Of a stretch of 64,000 nt of DNA, positions 725-62,425 are shown in pieces (position 1 is the first letter of the stretch; every line of letters starts with the position of its first letter). Made by a program: the position numbers and the translations under genes. The DNA is from Lepidodermella squamata (lineage: Eukaryota; Animalia; Gastrotricha), in assembly GCA_047495785.1 (NCBI GenBank), contig JBLDXI010000017.1, positions 558,001-622,000 of the forward strand. Direction: 5' to 3'. The notes beneath the pieces were generated by a model. It made no database searches. It was given only the letters and a program-made list of their open reading frames with translations, and was not told the origin of the DNA.

Positions 725-3700
725 CAACAAGAACATCACGAAGCAGACGAGAGGAAAAGCGAATATCACGACCCGAACGCGCAATACGTCGGGTTCATTG
801 AAGCGAAACACACGTGCATCGAAAGCTGCGGCGCCTACGTGCTGACAATCGAACGAACCGGCGGCGGCATCGAAGACACCGTCCTAGAGGTCGACTACAC
901 AACCGCCGATGGGACATCGATAGCTGCTAGTGATTATGAAGAAACAAAAGGCACTCTCATCTTCTCATTGGGCCAAAAAACGGCCGAAATTTCTGTCACC
1001 ATCATCGATGACGATGAATTTGAGGAGGATAAGGAATTTTATGTCCGGCTGTCGAATCCTAGGCTGACGTATAGCAAACACCCTGCAGTCACCCTACATG
1101 TCCCTGAGATGAACGGCAAGAAACGGGCGTCTCAGTCTGAAAGTAGGCGGACTTCGTCGAGCTTGAAACCATCGTCCGGTTCAAACAGCCGGCGGCCAAG
1201 TCACGCTCCATTTCCTTTCGTCGGCGAAGACCACGAATATTTCGTCAGCCTTTCAGTACCTGAAGCAACTGTGATGATACTAGACGACGACCACTGCGGC
1301 ATTTTCCACTTTGAAGGCCCCGAATCGGCGATTCCTGATAACATAGGAATCGCGCATATCAAGGTAATTAGGTCAACAGGTGCGAGGGGCCGGGTTAAAG
1401 TCCCGTTCCGGGTCAACCCTGGTACGGCTAAGGAGACGGAGGACTACATCCCGCCAACGGAACAGGAGTTAATTTTCGAAAACAACCAACCCGAAGCGTC
1501 GATTCCGGTTGAAATCGTTGATGCGAATCGGGTCGGCGAGTTGTTTACATTTTTCATCGAATTATTCGACCCGGTTATTATGACGCAACCTCCCGCTAAC
1601 CCGGCTGGCAATCCGTCCCTAGGCGATCCTAAGGTGATAAAACTCGGCATTTGTGAAGACCACGAACTGACCGAGGCCTTGGACCGGTTACTTAAAGTTG
1701 GCGATATGGCTGAGCTTATTTCATCCACAACATGGCTGGACCAGTTTAAGGAGGCGTTTCAAATATCATTCGACAGCGATAATGAAGACGGCAGCGAAGA
1801 TGAGGACGAAGAAACGCCTAGTCGTAGTGAAAACAGCGGAGAAAATGGCAAGAGCAAATGTTCGAAGTGTAGATCTCATTGCGGCAAAGTGAAAACGGTT
1901 CTACTGTGGGCGATTTCGCTGCCGTGGAAGCTGATTGCGGCGGCGTTGCCTCCAGCGCGTTACCTTGGCGGGTGGTTGGCGTTCGTTCTACTTCTTGGCC
2001 TCATGGCGTTGATCGCGGCTGTTATTGGTGACGTTGCTACGCATTTCGGGTAAGGAAAACGCAATTTATTTCCTGTCATTTTTGCGTAACGAAATTTATG
2101 CAAATGACAATTGCGCATTTTTTGATGGTTTTTTTCCCGATTAATCAATGAAATTTCAACATTAGTAATCATTTAGAAAATTGTGAGTATTTAATGAGGC
2201 TCTAATGAACCTTCTAAGATTTCAGGAATTTTTATTATAAATCTCCACAAATTCAAGTGAATTCGTGTAAATTCATTTCTGATTGTAACGAAGCTTAAAA
2301 ATTCGGTTCCAGCGAAAGATTCAGCAAAGAGCATTCATCATTATCTAACTGGATGGTTGCTGATTGCTGACAAAGTTCTTTATTATAGGCGCAATTTATA
2401 ACCGAAATGTTCGATGAGCTCTGTTTTATGGCGATTCGATGGAATTTAAGCTCATCTCTCATCTGATATACATTTTCTCATCCCAATCAATGAAGTTCGA
2501 TTTTTTATATATTTTTCAAATTTTACATCAAATTTCCAGTTATTAAGGAGTGCGCACATACTCTTCATGTAATTTGCCACCAACTGATTTATTTTTTCCT
2601 CGTATGTCATGTTTGGTCGAAGAAGTCACGGAAAAAATGGTCAACTTTGACGGTGCTCGAGGCTCGAACCACGTTCGCCTCTTGAACAGGCCGGGATAAT
2701 AGCAATCGCCACAACATTGAGTCATTACATACGATAAAGAGTCCGATAATTGAGCATTATGAGCCTAACCCATCCTTATTTTCTGGGTCAAATGAGCGAC
2801 TTTGTTCTGATTCCCGACAAGCGTCAGGGCATTTTTTGCCTTATTTATAGCTTAATTTGTCGGTCACGCAATAGGCTCGACGGCGCAGCCATAACTCGAT
2901 ATAATTATCGATGTTTGGGAAATCGTCTCAACGTGCCGCCATCCTTTTTTCCACGACTTGACCAAACAAAAAATGTACATACCTGCTATAAACTTTGGCG
3001 ATTTTTGCAACTTATTTCACTTTTGATCACTAATGATGCCCCCATGAATATACCTGTTTTAGCTAATTGCTACCCTTGGGTGTGTAGGGTATTCTTCATT
3101 TTAAGTTTCCAAGGCTGCCAATATCGGAAAAATCACTGATTCGTAAAATCGATACTTGAAATCGATATCGGCCTGAAGTAAAACTCGTAAATTGACCAAC
3201 GACATCGCAAAATACGCGTAATAGGAAGAGCTAACTGTTAGGCTTCATAAATAATATAGAAGTTCCATATATTAGGGGAAATTAACGGTGAAACCCATAT
3301 TTTTGAGTAAGAGCACCCAATTTTTCCCCCTCGAATTCCGATATTAATAATATGTTTAAACAATATTCCAGCTAAATATTTATCTTATTTATCTCATCTT
3401 AAAACTATGCATTTTTATTCCTTTATAACAGATGTACGGTTGGGATGAAAGACTCGGTGACGGCCGTCACGCTAATCGCCTTCGGCATGGGCCTGCCTGA
3501 TACGTTCGCTAGCCGGCACGCAGCCATGCATGAAAAAACAGCCGACGCAGCCATCGGCCACATCATGGGCTCGAATGCCGTCAACGTGTTCCTCGGCATC
3601 GGCCTCGCCTGGACAGTCGGAGCGTCGTACAAAAAGTTCCACGGCGAGGAGTACGAAGTGCCGCAGGGCAATTTCGGCTTCATCGTCACGGTCTATTGCT

Positions 3701-29302: not shown

Positions 29303-29943
29303 ATGCCGGTTGAAATGTCAAGATCGCCAAATAAACGACCAAATCGACAAAAATCTGAAATTTTACCAAAAAGGTAAACAAAATTCTTTTTAAGGTGGAT
29401 TTTTCTTATAATTCTTTTTTCAGGAGATTTCAGCTTGATTTGTCTGATCTCGAGCCGGATTCTCCGGATTCCTTGTCGTCAACCTCGTCTAACTCTTCAT
29501 CATCGTCCGATCACTGCTACAGCAAATTAGCGCCACTGAATTCGAGTTACGAAGACGACGACGATCGAACCGATTCTGAGCCTGACATGTCGATATGCCA
29601 CGGCTGCTCATGCGTTTTCAAATCACCTCTCGGCCTCGACCAACACCTCCGCCATTCAACAGTTTGCGCCTCAGCGCTTGTCTGTCAAAAAATGGCTCGA
29701 ATTCAACAAGAAATCAGTCAACTACGCGGTGATATTCTGCCGACGAGTGGTTACAACCGCCGAGCACCCCAGGAACGGCGGTATTGCATTGGGTGCAAAA
29801 CCGACTACGGAACATTCACGCGACTTGCGTGTCACCTAGCCCGATCAAAAACTTGCGAACTCGCCGCAACCTATCAAGAGATTGTAGCAACAAGCAAGCG
29901 ACTTCGTGATAGTAATAGCTATTCCAAATCATTGCAAATTTAG
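29303..29943 (+). CDS. Small zinc-finger protein ZF1 (two C-x2-C-x12-H-x6-C fingers)
   Basis: Exons 29303-29373 and 29424-29943. Basic N-terminus, Ser/Asp-rich region, then CHGC...HLRHSTVC and CIGC...HLARSKTC. Confidence 0.8.
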
Positions 29944-30374
29944 CTTCTCAAATTTTGAAATGAAATTACGTAGTCTTCTTTCAGCATCATCACATTTTTT
30001 CTTTCATCGTAGTATTTTGTATAAAAAATATGAACTTCTCTGTCGAAGGACGCAATAAAATGATTCATTGATCACTCGGTAGTCGCGTTTTGGCTGTTTT
30101 CTTTTTTATTATTGCGCGCCGAGAAGGGCCGAGCTGTAATCATTATTTGAGTGCGCGGCGTGCTAATAATCTAGGTCACGACGCAGACAGGGCGCCGTGC
30201 GGCCTGAGTTGCTGTTTTTGGCTTACACACTGCTAATCATAGAACAGTAAAAAAGAGTCTTCTCATTATTATTGCTGACGTGCTTGTTGCATAACAAAAT
30301 AATTTTCCTTTTAAAAATATTTAGGCTAGAGTTTTCAAATAAATAAAATTTGAATAATTTGTTGCTGCTTTGAT

Positions 30375-30910
30375 ATGGCTGGTCTGATGGCAAACGCTAA
30401 TAATCGCCCACTGGATTGGGAAATCGGCTCGAAGAAAATGTTTGCTGACGATTTTCGATTTGAAAAATTATGCCTGTTTTTATTTTTTTTAGGAGGTTCA
30501 CGGAGTGGGAATCAGATGATTTTGCGACGAATGAAAACGACTGTTTCTCGAACTCTCCCAAGTCCTCAGTTGTCGATTTAACTCACAGCGATGAAGACGA
30601 AAAATGTTTCGAGGCCAACACGTCGCCGAAATCCGTCATTGAATGCAGCGGGTGTTCTCGTCAATTTCGAACCCGTCTCGCCCTCAATTATCACCTCGCT
30701 CGTTCTCGCGCCTGTTCTAATCACAACAATGATGTCCAGAAGAAGCAACAAACGCCGATTTACCTCACCGGTTTCGTGTGTCAGTGCTGTTTCGCCCGGT
30801 TCAGCTCATTTCAGCCGCTTGTCTATCACCTATCGACTTCGACCGAATGCGAACAAGCGCGGATCTATCAAGATCTGGTTCAAATTGCTTCGGATATAAT
30901 CTCGGCCTAA
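30375..30910 (+). CDS. Small zinc-finger protein ZF2 (two C-x2-C-x12-H-x6-C fingers)
   Basis: Probable exons 30375-30439 and 30493-30910. CSGC...HLARSRAC and CQCC...HLSTSTEC; VVDLT followed by acidic residues. Confidence 0.78.
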
Positions 30911-31076
30911 TAACAATCAACTAGTCCAGTTTTCCCGCTCAATTTTTCAAAATTAATCTGACGTGTTGTAGATTTGTTGATAATTTTTCTCCCTGCTCAA
31001 ATGCCTTGTTGTTGCCTGATTTATTTCGTATAATAAAATTTCAGTGATTGTAGATGCTTCAGTTTTGTTTTTAGAA

Positions 31077-31571
31077 ATGAATTCTCGTAATTTTGAGGAA
31101 GATCGGCTATTCGCTGTGAATGTCGCCAAGTCGCTGTTTTGTAATTGCCCTCAAGAAATAATGGTAAAAATGTCGAAAACTAGGCCAAAAATTGACTGCT
31201 TGTTTATTTTATTTCAGGAGGACTCTGAACTGTGTGACCTTTGCCTATTTTATCTCTTCGAAGAAATCGAACCAGCGCAGCCACAGATTGAAGCATTGCC
31301 GATTGCAGAACCAGTTCAAGACGATTATGCAGCTAAAAACGTCTCAGAGGAACAAGAAAATTCATCGCGTTGCAAATTTTGCGGACGATTGTCGCGCCGT
31401 CTTGAAGAACATCAGGCGAAGTGTCCGAGTAAAAACGCAGTAAAGTGCCCTCTTTGCGATCGGCAATTTGCGTCACCTATCGCCCTCAGCGGACACATTC
31501 GGAAGGCTAAAAATTGCAAAAGCTTGTTGACAGTTTCGACAGAGGTTCCATTACAACGAAACGCTGCCTGA
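31077..31571 (+). CDS. Small zinc-finger protein ZF3
   Basis: Probable intron at about 31164-31217. CKFC...HQAKC and CPLC...HIRKAKNC; extra N-terminal CNC...CDLC. Confidence 0.75.
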   Translation: MNSRNFEEDRLFAVNVAKSLFCNCPQEIMVKMSKTRPKIDCLFILFQEDSELCDLCLFYLFEEIEPAQPQIEALPIAEPVQDDYAAKNVSEEQENSSRCKFCGRLSRRLEEHQAKCPSKNAVKCPLCDRQFASPIALSGHIRKAKNCKSLLTVSTEVPLQRNAA

Positions 31572-55450: not shown

Positions 55451-56201
55451 ATGGATACCTCTGAAATTAAAGCCTCAGCCGAACAGGCCAATTTACCGGT
55501 GATCGGTCCTTTGGATTTAACACCGTTCCGGGTTCACAAGACGCCGATATTTCCTCGGCAATTTATTGACGGCCTCACCTTCCCGCCTAATTATTGGCAA
55601 AATTTTTACCCGTGAGTTATTTATGAGCGGGATTATTTTTGTCATTGTTCTAATTTTCAGTCATTTTTCGTCGAATTTGAGCCAGTACCCTGCTATCGAT
55701 CCAAATAATCCGCAATACTTTGAGACAGCAAATTTCCCCGTATTCCCGTGTGACCAATGCAAATCTGAGTTTTCGTCCAGGCGGTCGCTGACCAATCACC
55801 TAGTCAAATCAAAAACCTGCCCAGCTGCCTTGGTGTACCAAAATCGATTCGCGAGATCGGACCCGGTTCTACCACCTGAACGGTACCAATGCACCCATTG
55901 CCCGGCCTCGTTTCTAGTCCGAGGCAACTTGAAACGTCATGAGTCCTGTTTCCACGCTGCCCCGGCTGATGCACCTACAGTCCCGCCAAGACGAGGCTCG
56001 CCGAGTAACCAGTGCAATTTCTGCCCTCGGGCTTACGCTACGGCCCACTACCTTCGACGACACGAGGCGCTGTACCACGGTAACAACACGATAAAATCGT
56101 ACGAAAAGCCTAAAATTGGATGCGAGTTCTGCCCGGAGAAATTTCTGAACGATTTCGCGTTGGCTAATCACGTCAGGTGGACCCATTTCCAAAAGAAATA
56201 A
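55451..56201 (+). CDS. Zinc-finger protein ZF4 (PLDLT motif, one H-x6-C finger, three C2H2 fingers)
   Basis: Exons 55451-55611 and 55661-56201 join in frame. Confidence 0.85.
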
Positions 56202-56340
56202 TCGATTAAACATGTTTCAATCTTCTTATTATTCGGGACTGTAACTTTTTGAGCAAAATAAAACTGTCAATATTTTATTCGAATTTTCAAATAATTTCAA
56301 ATAAATTTTCAAATCATCAAATTTTTCAAATAATTTCTCA

Positions 56341-57832
56341 TCACGGCTTCGATCCGCCGCCAATATTGAAAGTAACATTGCAGTTTGAAAATGTGAATTG
56401 ATGGCGGAAAAAATCCGATTTTTCCGCGATATTAACAGTTGGTTGCTTCTCCGGCATTCTCTCAAGTTCCGGGTCAGGCTGCCGAAAAGTGTCCAAGACA
56501 ACTGGGTCAATCACTTCATCCTCTGTTTGAGTCGATTTTTCTTCACAGTTCTCCCGCCGTAACGTCAACCGAATTTCTTCATTAATCGGTCGTTTTTGGC
56601 CAATTTTCGCCGCGCCTGGGAGGCCATATTTCTCCCTCAAAATCTCGTAGAAGGCTTCGATTGGTGTTTGAACAATACATTCGTTCGAGTATCGCCTGCT
56701 AACTTGGCAAAGCGCCGAGAAAAAAATCGGTATAATTGACTCGAAAATGCGGCTGTGAACTGTTTCTTCACTCGAAAATTGAACGCCTCTTTCAGGCTTC
56801 ATGAACAATTTAGGCGAGCCATCAGGTAGCAAGGCCAGGTATCGGGCTACAGCGACAAATGGGCAGTGCTTTGGGTTAATGCCAGGCAGCTGAGTTATCC
56901 CAGTTTTCGGACTGGGATTCGTTAAATTGTGCTTCAAATCGTAATAACGATGGTCCGAAGATTGCTGGCCATTTCGTAAAATCACCAATGAGTCAGGTCG
57001 CAATTTTTTTAGAAAAGCAACAAGCGATTGCTGGCCGATGGATTTTCCGAAATGGAGCAAAATAAGGAAAATAATTTCGACCTGAAAAAAAAACAATTTA
57101 GTGACGAATTCTTTTTAATTTATAAAATACCTGAAGAATGAAGGCGTTGGACCTTGTAAATGCTGCCAATATTTTTTCTAAATCGTCGGTGGAAAGCGAC
57201 CTAATCGGCACAATAACCAGCTGCTGGCCGCAATTTTCCGCATAATTTAACGCTCGACATCTCGCAAGTAGAACTCGGTTAGCCCCGGTGCCAGAAGCAA
57301 TTTGAGCCAGGTCCAATTGCTTCCCCAATCTCCCAGCTATCGAATCGAAATATCGCTGAAGGGCTGTTTTCAAGCTGAGGACAGAAACAGGGCCAAAGAG
57401 GTCGTTTGGCAGCTTTGCTTCGACGTAAAATTCGGTCAAACGGGCGGTAAGCCACCCGAAATCTTTGCATTTTGTTTGCAGATCGTTCTCGAAATCTGGC
57501 GCGTCGCCTTTTTCGATTAAAAAATCGCGAAATTGCTGCAAAATTGTAGCATCGATCGCTGATGTTGTCGGCGACCTCGGTAGGGTTAGATACGAGACAT
57601 TTTTCTTGCAATTATTGTTCAAAGTTGAATTTATCAGATTATATTTGTAAATTTCGATTTCGATGTAAGATTGAAGCTCATCGATGACCTTTTCCTCTGT
57701 GTCCAAATCGCTGGTCCTAAAATTTAAAGCAAGAATTTGAAGACATGATTAAATGTCGTTGACTAACCGGGAAATCAGTAGATGTGTAGCAGTCCTTGTG
57801 TTATTATCACTGGGTAAAGCTCTTGAAAACAT
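56341..57832 (-). CDS. Crypton-derived tyrosine-recombinase-fold protein (DUF3504-like; KIAA1958/KCTD1/ZMYM C-terminal type)
   Basis: Exons 57832-57768, 57716-57131, 57081-56341. LTEFYVEAK, SLKTALQRYF, ANRVLLARC, DLEKI...LQVEIIFLILLHFG, CPFVAVARYLALLP...LFMKP, tail FTFSNCNVTFNI. Confidence 0.78.
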
Positions 57833-58296
57833 TTTCTTGAGTGGAAAATATTTAGACAAAAAATGCCGAGAAATGGGGAAATCGATTGATTCAGAACGCG
57901 TGTTTTGGCTTGTTATCAATATTTTTAGAAATTATTCCATTTTTTATCGTCGCTTTTTCAGTCCAGCTATACCTTCCAAAAAAGGGTCAAACCAGCCTCG
58001 ATATAAAAATCGAGTGCGTAATAAAAATGAGTGATTTTAGCTCGTGTGTAGCGTTCGCGTAGTAATAAAATAATGTTAGGTCACATCGACATGTTGTGGC
58101 ACGCAAAAACACGTTGGGCAACTAATAATCACACGTAGAATCGCCACCACACTTTTTGCCATGTTGATTTCCTCAGCTGGCAATAAAAGACTGTCTAGGT
58201 CATCTCGCACCTAAAATACTTCTTATCATTAGTTCTCCATATAAAAATAATGCAACGATTTTATTTTTAAGGAGGAATTTTTATTTTTTAGATTTT

Positions 58297-59025
58297 ATGG
58301 ATTTATCAAAAAGCAATTTTACGCCGTTTAATGACGCGCCTTTGGATTTGTCGCTGAATGTTCGAGGTCAAAAATGGCTCAATGAATCATCGTCAGTAAC
58401 ATCGACCTCGAACTTGACGGCCGAAAAATTTCAGAAAATCTTGGAAAAGCGTTACCCCTGCTCATATTGTCCGAGCTCATTTTCAATGGCGACAAATCTG
58501 CGTAAACACGAGCGAAATCTGCACGGCGAGCTGCTCTCAATTCAATACTACAATGAATCACTATTTTGTAACGGATGTCGGACGCAGTTTTTATCCCGGC
58601 GGTCGCTGAATTACCATCTAAGCCAATCGACAACGTGCCAAACAGCGTTGAAGAGTCAAGGAAAATCAGCCGAAAGTCTCATGTCAGCTGCTCAAAATTG
58701 CGTTGGGGTTATCTCATGTCGCTGGTGTCCTGCCACGTTCAAATTAGCGGCTAAATTGCGAAAACACGAACGGTTGAGTCACGGCGAAAAATTGACCGAT
58801 CTGCCGTTTCAATGCAACGGATGTTTGAAGCGTTACAGCAATAAGAAAAGCATCACGCAGCACCTGAGGTGGTCTATTCGCTGCCATCAATCGTCGACGT
58901 CCGGGCAAATGAAAGGCGAGGAATTTCTCCTGAATTGTCGAACCCAGTTGCAGTTACAAGCTCAAAATCAGCCTGAAACTCCGTCGCAGCCTGCTAATTT
59001 GCCGCTCACTAAAATTACCTGGTGA
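58297..59025 (+). CDS. Zinc-finger protein ZF5 (PLDLS motif; alternating C2H2 and H-x6-C fingers)
   Basis: Single ORF: CSYC..HERNLH, CNGC..HLSQSTTC, CRWC..HERLSH, CNGC..HLRWSIRC. Confidence 0.87.
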   Translation: MDLSKSNFTPFNDAPLDLSLNVRGQKWLNESSSVTSTSNLTAEKFQKILEKRYPCSYCPSSFSMATNLRKHERNLHGELLSIQYYNESLFCNGCRTQFLSRRSLNYHLSQSTTCQTALKSQGKSAESLMSAAQNCVGVISCRWCPATFKLAAKLRKHERLSHGEKLTDLPFQCNGCLKRYSNKKSITQHLRWSIRCHQSSTSGQMKGEEFLLNCRTQLQLQAQNQPETPSQPANLPLTKITW

Positions 59026-60500
59026 TTTCTGGGTTTTTCGATATGGACTGATTTTATGAATAATTCTGCTTGATATTATAGCCATTTACTCATATTGTTG
59101 CTGTACTAAATTCTATTCATTTATCTACTTAATTAATTCGTCGACATTAACAGAAATCGATTCACTACTTTTTTCCTATCTCGTTTTTTGTGCCTTAACA
59201 TTGCTCAACAAAATAAAATGTGCAAGGTAACTGCCATATATTTTCTGTTATGAATATTTTAAGAATTAATTCCTGGCTTTGAATATGATCGATTTCGAAC
59301 TTAGAAGGGACTTGATGGAAGGGATGGTATGTGCGATTAATTTACAGAATTTCCAGATTTTGACAATTTAAGCAAATATCGATTCCTATATCGATTTTAA
59401 AAATCAGTGTATTTCGATTATAATCGAATGTTAGTTAACATAATTTGAAATTTTCTGAGGATAGCATTTAGCTGAAGTAAAAAGTTCCACGACCAGTATC
59501 GATCTAGACCAGAAATAGCCGAAATCGCAAAGAATGCCGCAATTATAATGACGTGGCATTTCATCCAAACTTTTGCCTTGTGGTTTTTCCGTAATTTTTC
59601 AAAAACAAAAAATTAATTGATTGGGAATTCTAGAAATATAGTTGTTTTTCGACCTGCAATAGTGAAGCTAACGAGGGGCTCACGAACAAATAATTCGTTA
59701 ATTTGCGCTTCTCAGTTACGCAACATTAAATTCGAGCCTGCCCGCACGAGCGCGCGCTCGCAAAAAATGCGCTGTGTTCAGAGCCTATTAACCGTCTGCT
59801 TGGGCAGGGAAAAGTGGAAAATATTAGTGCATCTGTACTATTATGGCGCTATTTTTAGCCGCTAACTCGCCGGCATGGCTCAGCGATTGTAACGCTAATT
59901 GGCGAATAAGCTTTTAAAGACCCGGGCAAACCGGCCGAGAGAATCAGTCAGACACCAATTATCTGTTCAATTCGCTTATCATTTTTCAGTCACCCTGCTT
60001 CCCATTCCCACAGCAGAACAATAGTATAAACAATTCGCAAACTTGTTGTTGATCGGCTTTCAAGTAGGAAATCGGGAATTTATTCCTAATAATTTCTTTA
60101 TTTCCCAAATTTTATGCAATATTCTTTTTTAAATTATTCGATAAAATTAGAACGGATTTCTTTTCTTTTCTTGCCGGTTCTACGTTCAAGGCACGTTCCG
60201 TCCAAAAATGCGTAATATTAGGTTTGAAATCGCACGCCCGACGTTCAGCACGACCGCCTTTATTGTTACGATGGATTCAACGCGGTGCGGCCACGGTGCG
60301 CCTTCGATCAGTTCGCGTGTCACTTTTTTACCATCAATTGAACATTTATTTTTAAACTCAAGATCCACGTGACTTTTAGTATTTTATGCGCCATAAAAAT
60401 TCGTAGTAAAAAAAGGAGAAAATTCGTGTATTTATTAAGCGTAGCATGGGGCAGACTATCGGGGCTCATTTCAAAATATTTTTAATTTTTTCAACTTGTC

Positions 60501-60983
60501 CATACGGGCGCCGTCGTTCACAAAGTCAAAAAACTAAGAAATTTTCAACACAATGGTTGCCCCCTTGAAAATTGCGATTTTGCAATAAATAACACAACCC
60601 AGTAGGTAATCGATGACGCTCTGAACTCTGGTTACCGTTTTATCTCTCAATTATCTAACCGTAACCGGCAATTAGCAAAAAATGAAAATTTTCGAATCGA
60701 AGTGATTTTCAACTCATTTCTAGGGTTAAAAAAATCGCTGATTCCGAAAATCACATTTTCAACTCTAAATTCGGCGATTTAAATTTTTTTAAGTCATTTA
60801 GGTCCAGTTTTCGACCAGTTAGACTTGAAATAAAAATCTGGAAAATTCACCAAAATGTGCGGCTCAAAAATTTACTACATAGACCTGTTTTCAGCGTTCT
60901 AGAATGATTTTTAAGGAGGGTGACCATTGTCTCAAATGACACAAATTTTGTAAAAATAATTTGTTAACGACGGCGCCCGTATG
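60501..60983. mobile_element. Non-autonomous DNA transposon with CATACGGGCG termini and a 2-bp (TC) flanking duplication; possibly CMC/CACTA-like
   Basis: tc|catacgggcgccgtcgtt ... aacgacggcgcccgtatg|tc, plus subterminal inverted motif caatgg..ccc.ctt.aaaat. Confidence 0.75.
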
Positions 60984-61059
60984 TCCGTTCATTTGAAGTT
61001 CAATATTATATTTAATTCTCAATATTTTTAGTTTCCATTTGGATTATTTTGCGATTATA

Positions 61060-61347
61060 CAGGGTGACTTTTTTATAGTGGAAATAATCTTTGTTAGCAT
61101 TAATCGGGACTAGTACTGTCTAGTATTGCGAGTACTTGCACTGCACTAAAGTCGATTTCTCCAAACTCTTCAAACTCTATCTGATAATTATCGCGTAATA
61201 CCAGGCCATTCATAAAATTTTATTGCTAGCACGAGTTCGTTAAGTTTGGAGAAATCGACATGCAAGTACTCGCCATACAAAGATGATTCAGTACTAGACG
61301 CAATTATTGCTAACATGGATTATTGCCACTATAAAAAAGTCACCCTG
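61060..61347. mobile_element. Tc1/mariner-type MITE with TA target duplication
   Basis: TA|cagggtgacttttttatagtgg ... ccactataaaaaagtcaccctg|TA; imperfect arms of about 105 bp. Confidence 0.88.
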
Positions 61348-61356
61348 TATAATAAA

Positions 61357-62425
61357 ATGTTTATTACGCACCCTGCTGTGCTTGTTCACCCTATGCCGGC
61401 CTTGGTCGATCCGATAACGGCTCAGTGTTACCTGTACCCACCCTACGTGCCCGCGGTTATTTTCAACGCCCCTGTGGCAAGCAGTGTAGCCGAGCCGTTG
61501 GATCTGAGTAACAACCACGTCAAATCGTCATCTGCCCACCCTATCGACCTCTCCTCCCGCTGCGCGTCAACATCGCCAGGCCTCGTCAACGCAAATTCGA
61601 ATTCGAAAAACAAAATCGACTCGACTTCGAATTCGGCGAGAAAGGTGTTGGGACCAGTCGATTCAGCTCAAATTCCGCAATCGGATCCGGTCAAAAATGA
61701 AGTGATTATTGTGAAGAGCGATTCTGACCCTCAAATGCCCACTCTACCTCCTGCTTTCAGTCCGTGGCTACAGGTATTAACAATTTTGAAATTTTAAGGT
61801 TAATTTTTTAATCAAAACGAATTTTAAATTTTAAAATTAAAATTTTTGAATTTAAGATTTCAAGTTTTATGAATTAAGAATTCATTTTTAGATATAATAA
61901 AAAAATTAAAATTAAAATTTGAATTTAAAGTTAAAAAATTTTGAGTTCAAATTTCAAAATATTTTTCTTAATTTTCAATATTTTTTATAGGAGTTGCAAC
62001 TTGGCAAGCAAGAAGGCGTTCGCCCTAAGGCTACTTCAACCCCTCGCCGAGCCTCGACCGGTTCAATCACCCTGCCTCAATTCTCCCCGATTTTCGCCGC
62101 CGATGACTCGGTAAAACGCCTATCAGCCTCGACCTCAAATCTCAGCCCTGCTGCACCATCATCGCAACAAAACCAGCCTAGCAAGCTGTTTCAGTGCCGA
62201 TTTTGCGATCGCACCTACACGGCTACGGCGACGGCTCGGCGCCACGAGCGGCAAAACCATCAGGAACAGCTGGCTAAACTGAACGGGTTTCACTTCAAAT
62301 GCGACTCGTGCGGGTGCATTTTCCAGACGCGGCTCAGCCTGCAAACGCATCAAATGCGAGCGCCCGATTGTTATCACAAATTTATGAGCGCCGCAGATCA
62401 GCAATCAGCATTAACTAAAAAATAA
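61357..62425 (+). CDS. Zinc-finger protein ZF6 (PLDLS and PIDLS motifs; one C2H2 and one H-x6-C finger)
   Basis: Exons 61357-61773 and 61991-62425; CRFC..HERQNH and CDSC..HQMRAPDC. Start codon uncertain. Confidence 0.83.

Follow-up and report, generated by a model that had tools for sequence, protein, structure and literature searches.

Do small zinc finger genes and a recombinase-like gene lying side by side in a gastrotrich genome belong to one silencing system, or are they two separate things? The question is raised by a stretch of 64,000 nucleotides from Lepidodermella squamata (assembly GCA_047495785.1, contig JBLDXI010000017.1, positions 558,001 to 622,000), here called the window, in which all positions below are counted. 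Three of its genes, ZF4, ZF5, and ZF6, encode small zinc finger proteins with short N-terminal peptides of the type recognized by the co-repressor CtBP, and they are packed around a gene that was labeled DUF3504-like and that we call the recombinase-like gene. The original prediction combined the four genes into a split, ZMYM-like silencing system, with fast-evolving zinc finger adaptors and a transposon-derived scaffold. From the sequence, we rather favor two separate things side by side, a zinc finger family with CtBP motifs and a divergent recombinase-like host gene; a joint system is unproven, and adjacency is the only link between the zinc finger genes and the recombinase-like gene.

We looked into the zinc finger genes across the window and found six of them, all small and all on the + strand, in two tandem clusters, ZF4 to ZF6 and, 24 kb away, ZF1 to ZF3. 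With the same modest preference that we give to our reading as a whole, we regard them as one lineage-specific family. The C-x2-C-x12-H-x6-C finger pattern occurs nine times in the window, each time inside one of these six genes, which also hold six of the seven window matches to C-x2-C-x12-H-x3-5-H. The fingers of the family alternate between the classical C2H2 type (H-x4-H) and a C2HC variant (H-x6-C), and those of ZF1 to ZF3 are almost wholly of the C-x2-C-x12-H-x6-C variant. Against the Pfam models of classical C2H2 fingers (PF00096/PF13894), ZF4 and ZF5 scored over the cut-off, with 50.4 and 42.7 bits, respectively, and ZF6 reached 23.6 for a cut-off of 27. The finger regions of the paralogs are only 27 to 31% identical over long alignments, with up to 54% identity for single fingers (tblastn), and the family is therefore old. 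A word-based search of 5.8 billion clusters gave no relative of ZF5, and the exact ZF5 protein is not on record in public assemblies.

We then analyzed the peptides that precede the fingers. As had been claimed, PLDLT in ZF4, PLDLS in ZF5, and PLDLS together with PIDLS in ZF6 were seen in a six-frame scan, all four of them N-terminal to the fingers. The pattern P[LIVM]DL[ST] matched nine times in the six frames of the window (∼128,000 codons), four of these matches being concentrated in the ∼250 N-terminal codons of ZF4, ZF5, and ZF6; these four are exact matches to the ELM motif LIG_CtBP_PxDLS, against five in the remaining window. The N termini of ZF4 to ZF6 could not be aligned apart from PxDL[S/T], which is their sole common feature, and no Pfam domain was detected around the motif in ZF6 exon 1 (61246-61797) or in residues 1 to 25 of ZF5. 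Since the N termini align solely at the motif and the finger regions are strongly diverged, this short peptide has been retained in an old family. In the second cluster, ZF1 carries the related peptide QLDLS (QLDLSDLEPDS), followed by a serine-rich/acidic run, and ZF2 contains the VVDLT motif noted earlier, followed by the acidic/serine run HSDEDE.

The PxDL[S/T] peptides of ZF4 to ZF6 fit the docking consensus of CtBP and look functional. We propose, as the likeliest mechanism, that the fingers would bind DNA or a partner protein, that the N-terminal peptide would dock CtBP, and that the zinc finger protein would thereby repress transcription in the manner of ZEB, Kruppel, Snail, FOG, and ZNF217/516. 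With CtBP binding, DNA binding, and repression all predicted, ZF4 to ZF6 are probably CtBP-recruiting repressors, and zinc finger proteins that recruit CtBP via PxDLS are known precedents (PMC2532748, PMC5612949, PMC6061687). The likeness to the CtBP-recruiting C2H2 repressors (ZEB1/2, Kruppel, Knirps, Snail, FOG, ZNF217, and ZNF516) lies in the C2H2-type fingers and in the one or two P-x-D-L-S/T peptides that accompany them elsewhere in the protein. The proteins described here differ from them in being very small (233 to 283 amino acids [aa]), in their non-canonical finger spacing, in the H-x6-C C2HC variant, and in their arrangement in tandem lineage-specific clusters, and their CtBP binding is a prediction. 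FOG mixes C2H2 with C2HC fingers.

The recombinase-like gene has three exons and 463 codons on the - strand. We compared positions 56100 to 62099 of the window with two public runs, X1 and X2; ZF4 lies almost wholly outside this interval. X1 is cDNA-like, as only exons are covered, two introns (57082-57130 and 61774-61990) are exactly skipped, and one end carries a SMART-type oligo. X2 is genomic-DNA-like; in it, the recombinase-like gene has the same depth as its flanks and is therefore single-copy. The X1 contigs demonstrate that the recombinase-like gene, ZF5, and ZF6 are transcribed. One of them (57280-57692) carries a SMART-type template-switch oligo at its 57692 end, which lies 24 nt into exon 2 of the recombinase-like gene. 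Since this exon has no ATG codon, an upstream start is needed, and the cDNA ending at 57692 is probably truncated. The predicted exon 1 had an X1 depth of ∼2 with no RNA confirmation, and no X1 coverage was found across 57900-58299.

Codon changes were analyzed for the best-supported 40 of the 96 differences between the window and the runs. Among the differences listed, the changed codons of ZF5 were synonymous in 12 cases out of 12; at the serine codon 58477-58479, all three positions differ (TCA in the window, AGC in X1), again synonymously. In the recombinase-like gene, 4/4 changed codons in X1 and 9/11 in X2 were synonymous, the exceptions being K-to-R and L-to-F, and the changes listed for codons 90 to 158 were synonymous or conservative. 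This excess over the ∼1/4 of synonymous codons given by random changes argues for purifying selection on both genes. The alleles or strains are well diverged under strong constraint, and the 12 synonymous changes of ZF5 contradict, on a short time-scale, the description of the zinc fingers as fast-evolving. The recombinase-like gene is present in a single copy, its transcripts are spliced, purifying selection acts on it, and a search for terminal repeats around it found none; the X2 depth, the spliced X1 cDNA, the synonymous excess, and the lack of such repeats are those of a host gene. An active transposon copy was considered and rejected because the gene is single-copy, spliced, and under selection.

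As to what this gene descends from, the Atlas language-model features connected exon 2 with clusters of QRICH1 (PF25561), ALOG, and Phage_int_SAM (score of 0.96 with 170 to 175 shared features) and exon 3 with clusters of Phage_integrase, DUF3504, and NDC10_II (scores of 0.90 to 0.91). In the Atlas, scores near 0.9 arise by chance, and a score of 0.96 with 170 to 175 shared features is reached in ∼1/100 shuffled proteins. Of the 10 best family matches of exon 2, no more than 5 belong to a common family or clan. Pfam files QRICH1, ALOG, and Phage_int_SAM apart, although the three are related by evolution. The segment ...CPF..A.YL..LP......LFMKPER... looks by eye like ZMYM-type DUF3504 domains. 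The two exons are non-overlapping queries whose matches fall in the correct domain order, and a Crypton-type architecture is suggested by the language-model features: a SAM-like N-terminal domain followed by a C-terminal DUF3504/tyrosine recombinase (YR) domain is the layout of Crypton-type recombinases and of their domesticated descendants (PMC3212892). An origin of the gene from a recombinase/DUF3504 ancestor is likely in our estimation, and by its language-model features the gene has probably descended, with very strong divergence, from a Crypton-type tyrosine recombinase, its putative parts being a SAM-like N-terminal domain and a DUF3504/YR-like domain. By eye, the first arginine of the catalytic tetrad seems to be replaced in the segment ...HFGKS..., and most of the R-H-R-Y tetrad is known to have been lost in domesticated Crypton recombinases (PMC3212892).

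Several results weigh against the reading that we favor. Canonical TGEKP linkers are absent from the zinc fingers, so DNA binding by these fingers is not assured, and the head-to-head pair of ZF5 and the recombinase-like gene, 464 bp apart, may share a promoter, with some co-regulation of the two. For the recombinase-like gene, the two large exons searched separately gave no match in Pfam (E ≤ 1 and E ≤ 10, DUF3504 [PF12012] and Phage_integrase included), PHROGs, or NCBIfam. A phmmer search of the PDB with the recombinase-like exons gave only noise, and exon 3 had 0 matches among 1.84 billion protein representatives. Exons 2 and 3 had no match in the word-based search of 5.8 billion clusters, the length window of which would miss full-length relatives of ∼460 aa, and the weak tblastn matches of exon 3 to 50,697 phage records did not pile up on integrases. 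The AlphaFold2 (AF2) single-sequence models were unusable, with a predicted local distance difference test (pLDDT) score of 34 for exon 3 and 48 for part of exon 2, and the partial exon 2 model gave noise with Foldseek against the PDB. Support for the DUF3504 label is partial: it comes from the language-model features, which for exon 3 point to DUF3504/integrase/NDC10, and not from the Pfam, PHROGs, NCBIfam, PDB, word, and phmmer searches. Blank sequence and fold searches, Atlas scores that chance can produce, and an exon 2 whose top family matches agree in 5 cases out of 10 would all suit a lineage-specific orphan of another fold with spurious language-model neighbors; we hold this to be unlikely, as the two exons, queried independently, match in the correct order an N- and a C-terminal domain that belong to the same architecture, and the exon 2 score is one seen in ∼1 in 100 shuffled proteins. 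We are equally disinclined to see in the peptide, written as [P/V/Q]-[L/V/I]-D-L-[S/T], a SUMO-interaction motif (SIM) or another short linear motif through which the zinc finger proteins would act via a partner different from CtBP. A SIM core needs more than the two hydrophobic positions that PLDLS, PLDLT, and PIDLS offer, and the CtBP consensus is matched exactly four times in the three proteins ZF4 to ZF6, even though ZF2 follows its VVDLT with HSDEDE, ZF1 follows QLDLSDLEPDS with a serine-rich run, and Pfam gives a weak, sub-threshold similarity to the finger pairs of the SUMO ligase ZNF451. The ZF2 peptide with its HSDEDE run fits PIAS-type SIMs and is rather SIM-like, so that members of the family may act through more than one kind of partner.

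The silencing module itself, in which zinc finger adaptors and a DUF3504-like scaffold would make up a CtBP-linked "split ZMYM" with a shared promoter, perhaps directed against transposons, seems to us quite improbable. The genes are immediate neighbors, at distances close to the ∼140 and ∼460 bp first reported: ZF4 ends with its stop at 56201 and the stop codon of the recombinase-like gene occupies 56343-56341, leaving a tail-to-tail gap of 139 bp, and 464 bp separate the ATG of the latter (57832) from that of ZF5 (58297), head-to-head. The recombinase-like gene, ZF5, and ZF6 are also transcribed in one and the same run, X1. However, adjacency is the sole link, and spacings of 140 to 460 bp are ordinary in the window (∼430 bp between ZF1 and ZF2, ∼170 bp between ZF2 and ZF3, and ∼230 bp between a channel gene and ZF4). 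The cluster of ZF1 to ZF3 has no partner gene, the recombinase-like gene is on the strand opposite to all six zinc finger genes, and its DUF3504 identity is itself unproven. In the nearest precedent, the WOC-ROW-HP1c system of Drosophila, a DUF3504-family protein acts together with a separately encoded zinc finger protein (PMC9724677, PMC2662408), and repression of a CtBP-complex target needs ZNF198-like proteins (PMC2532748). The partner in Drosophila is HP1c, not CtBP, and the WOC and ROW genes are not known to be neighbors. ZMYM2/ZNF198, ZMYM3, ZMYM4, and WOC resemble the locus in bringing zinc fingers and a Cre-like (DUF3504) domain into co-repressor biology, but they have MYM fingers fused to the Cre-like domain in one polypeptide. 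Such a fusion was not found here: the C2H2/C2HC fingers are encoded by separate genes, and neither Pfam nor a finger-pattern scan detected a zinc finger in the recombinase-like gene. Binding of ZNF198 to LSD1-CoREST-HDAC1 requires its MYM fingers, which also suffice for it, and the Cre-like domain is a separate C-terminal part (PMC2532748); the link to LSD1-CoREST-HDAC that had been invoked as a bridge therefore depends on a finger type that is missing here, and not on the Cre-like domain.

We found no specific promoter word shared upstream of the seven genes, only AT-rich words, and an Rfam scan of the window returned nothing. The word GTGACCT, mostly extended to GTGACCTA, has 12 copies in the window versus 2.9 expected, and 0/100 shuffles reached 12. 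Its sites include 25711 and 25732 (a close pair), 30173, 49409, 55302, and 58078, and those that were checked are in spacers upstream of genes. GTGACCTA is found upstream of ZF2, upstream of ZF4, and in the spacer between ZF5 and the recombinase-like gene. Being over-represented window-wide, it is a general motif, not one specific to the module, and may serve this genome as a common promoter element.

With ordinary spacings, opposite strands, no partner for ZF1 to ZF3, and no specific shared promoter motif, the split ZMYM-like system was not upheld. For the two separate things that we favor instead, the position of the recombinase-like gene is most simply explained as an old insertion, not a functional module: the gene would have inserted into the same-strand tandem zinc finger array of a compact genome and then been kept. 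We give very little credence to the still broader idea of CtBP as a hub for lineage-specific DNA-binding families with independently acquired PxDL[S/T] peptides, with a recombinase-derived protein as their dedicated partner and silencing of the KRAB-ZNF/KAP1 kind.

The features of the locus are listed in the table. The genome is compact, with introns of 49 to 53 nt and TTTTCAG-type acceptors in the gene models of the window, which also contains tandem NCX exchangers, Kunitz proteins, class-C G protein-coupled receptors (GPCRs), and Cys-loop channels. A frame check of ZF4, the recombinase-like gene, ZF5, and ZF6 gave one terminal stop per gene model, the joined frame of ZF4 being open with its single stop at the end.

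Features of the zinc finger/recombinase-like locus (window positions; MITE, miniature inverted-repeat transposable element)
Feature	Position	Strand	Description
ZF1-ZF3 paralogous cluster	29303-31571	+	C2HC fingers; QLDLS in ZF1, VVDLT in ZF2; without recombinase-like neighbor
ZF4 exon 1	55451-55611	+	PLDLT at 55508-55522; ATG, GTGAGT donor, and 49-nt intron read from sequence
ZF4 exon 2	55661-56201	+	One C2HC finger (H-x6-C) and three C2H2 fingers; Pfam zf-C2H2_4 1.8e-13, zf-C2H2 7.8e-10
Recombinase-like gene, exon 3	56341-57081	-	246 aa plus stop; putative DUF3504/YR-like domain, C-terminal tail; covered by X1 contigs
Recombinase-like gene, intron	57082-57130	-	49 nt, GT..AG; exactly skipped by X1 contig
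Recombinase-like gene, exon 2	57131-57716	-	Putative SAM-like/QRICH1-type N-terminal domain; X1 contig 57280-57692
Recombinase-like gene, predicted exon 1	57768-57832	-	ATG 57832, GTTAGT donor, 51-nt intron 57717-57767; from sequence signals only
Head-to-head spacer, possible shared promoter	57833-58296		464 bp; one GTGACCTA copy
ZF5	58297-59025	+	Single exon, 242 aa; PLDLS at 58339-58353, then two (C2H2 + C2HC) pairs; Pfam zf-C2H2 5.4e-11
MITE	60501-60983		24-nt terminal inverted repeats; missing in X2 allele
Mariner-type MITE directly upstream of ZF6	61060-61347		TA duplication, ∼65-nt terminal inverted repeats; contains in-frame ATG 61315
ZF6 exon 1	61357-61773	+	PLDLS at 61495-61509, PIDLS at 61540-61554; X1 contig 61586-61771
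ZF6 intron	61774-61990	+	217 nt, GT..AG; skipped by X1 contig
ZF6 exon 2	61991-62425	+	One C2H2 and one C2HC finger; Pfam zf-C2H2_4 7.1e-5, under cut-off

Both MITEs are present in the window and missing from the X2 allele, as X2 joints skip them (60496 to 60982 and 61057 to 61348). MITE sequence is found in X2 at 10 to 40 times the flanking depth, with values of 900 to 3500 over the MITE at 60501-60983 versus ∼80 in the flanks. The ATG at 61315, from which ZF6 would gain 14 residues, is located inside the mariner-type MITE. Since this MITE is missing from the X2 allele, we rejected 61315 as the start of ZF6, and 61357 is the likelier one.

The recombinase-like gene resembles the domesticated Crypton genes KCTD1b, KIAA1958, and QRICH1 (Kojima and Jurka 2011, PMC3212892) as a single-copy, expressed host gene under selection and by its probable two-domain layout, SAM-like plus YR-like, but its divergence puts it beyond the reach of the Pfam DUF3504 model, and the searches gave no orthologues. 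By analogy, the zinc finger genes recall the KRAB-ZNF/KAP1 and ZAD-ZNF expansions, which also form lineage-specific tandem clusters with a short N-terminal module that recruits a common co-repressor; the family described here is, in contrast, small, its recruiter is a 5-residue motif and not a domain, and a link to transposons is speculative. The zinc finger family and the recombinase-like gene would alter present understanding only if the two proved to interact. If the peptides bind CtBP, L. squamata, an invertebrate of a poorly sampled kind, would possess a compact family of repressors that is specific to its lineage and depends on CtBP, and the recombinase-like gene, if our reading of it is true, would add a further independent case of a domesticated Crypton-type recombinase.

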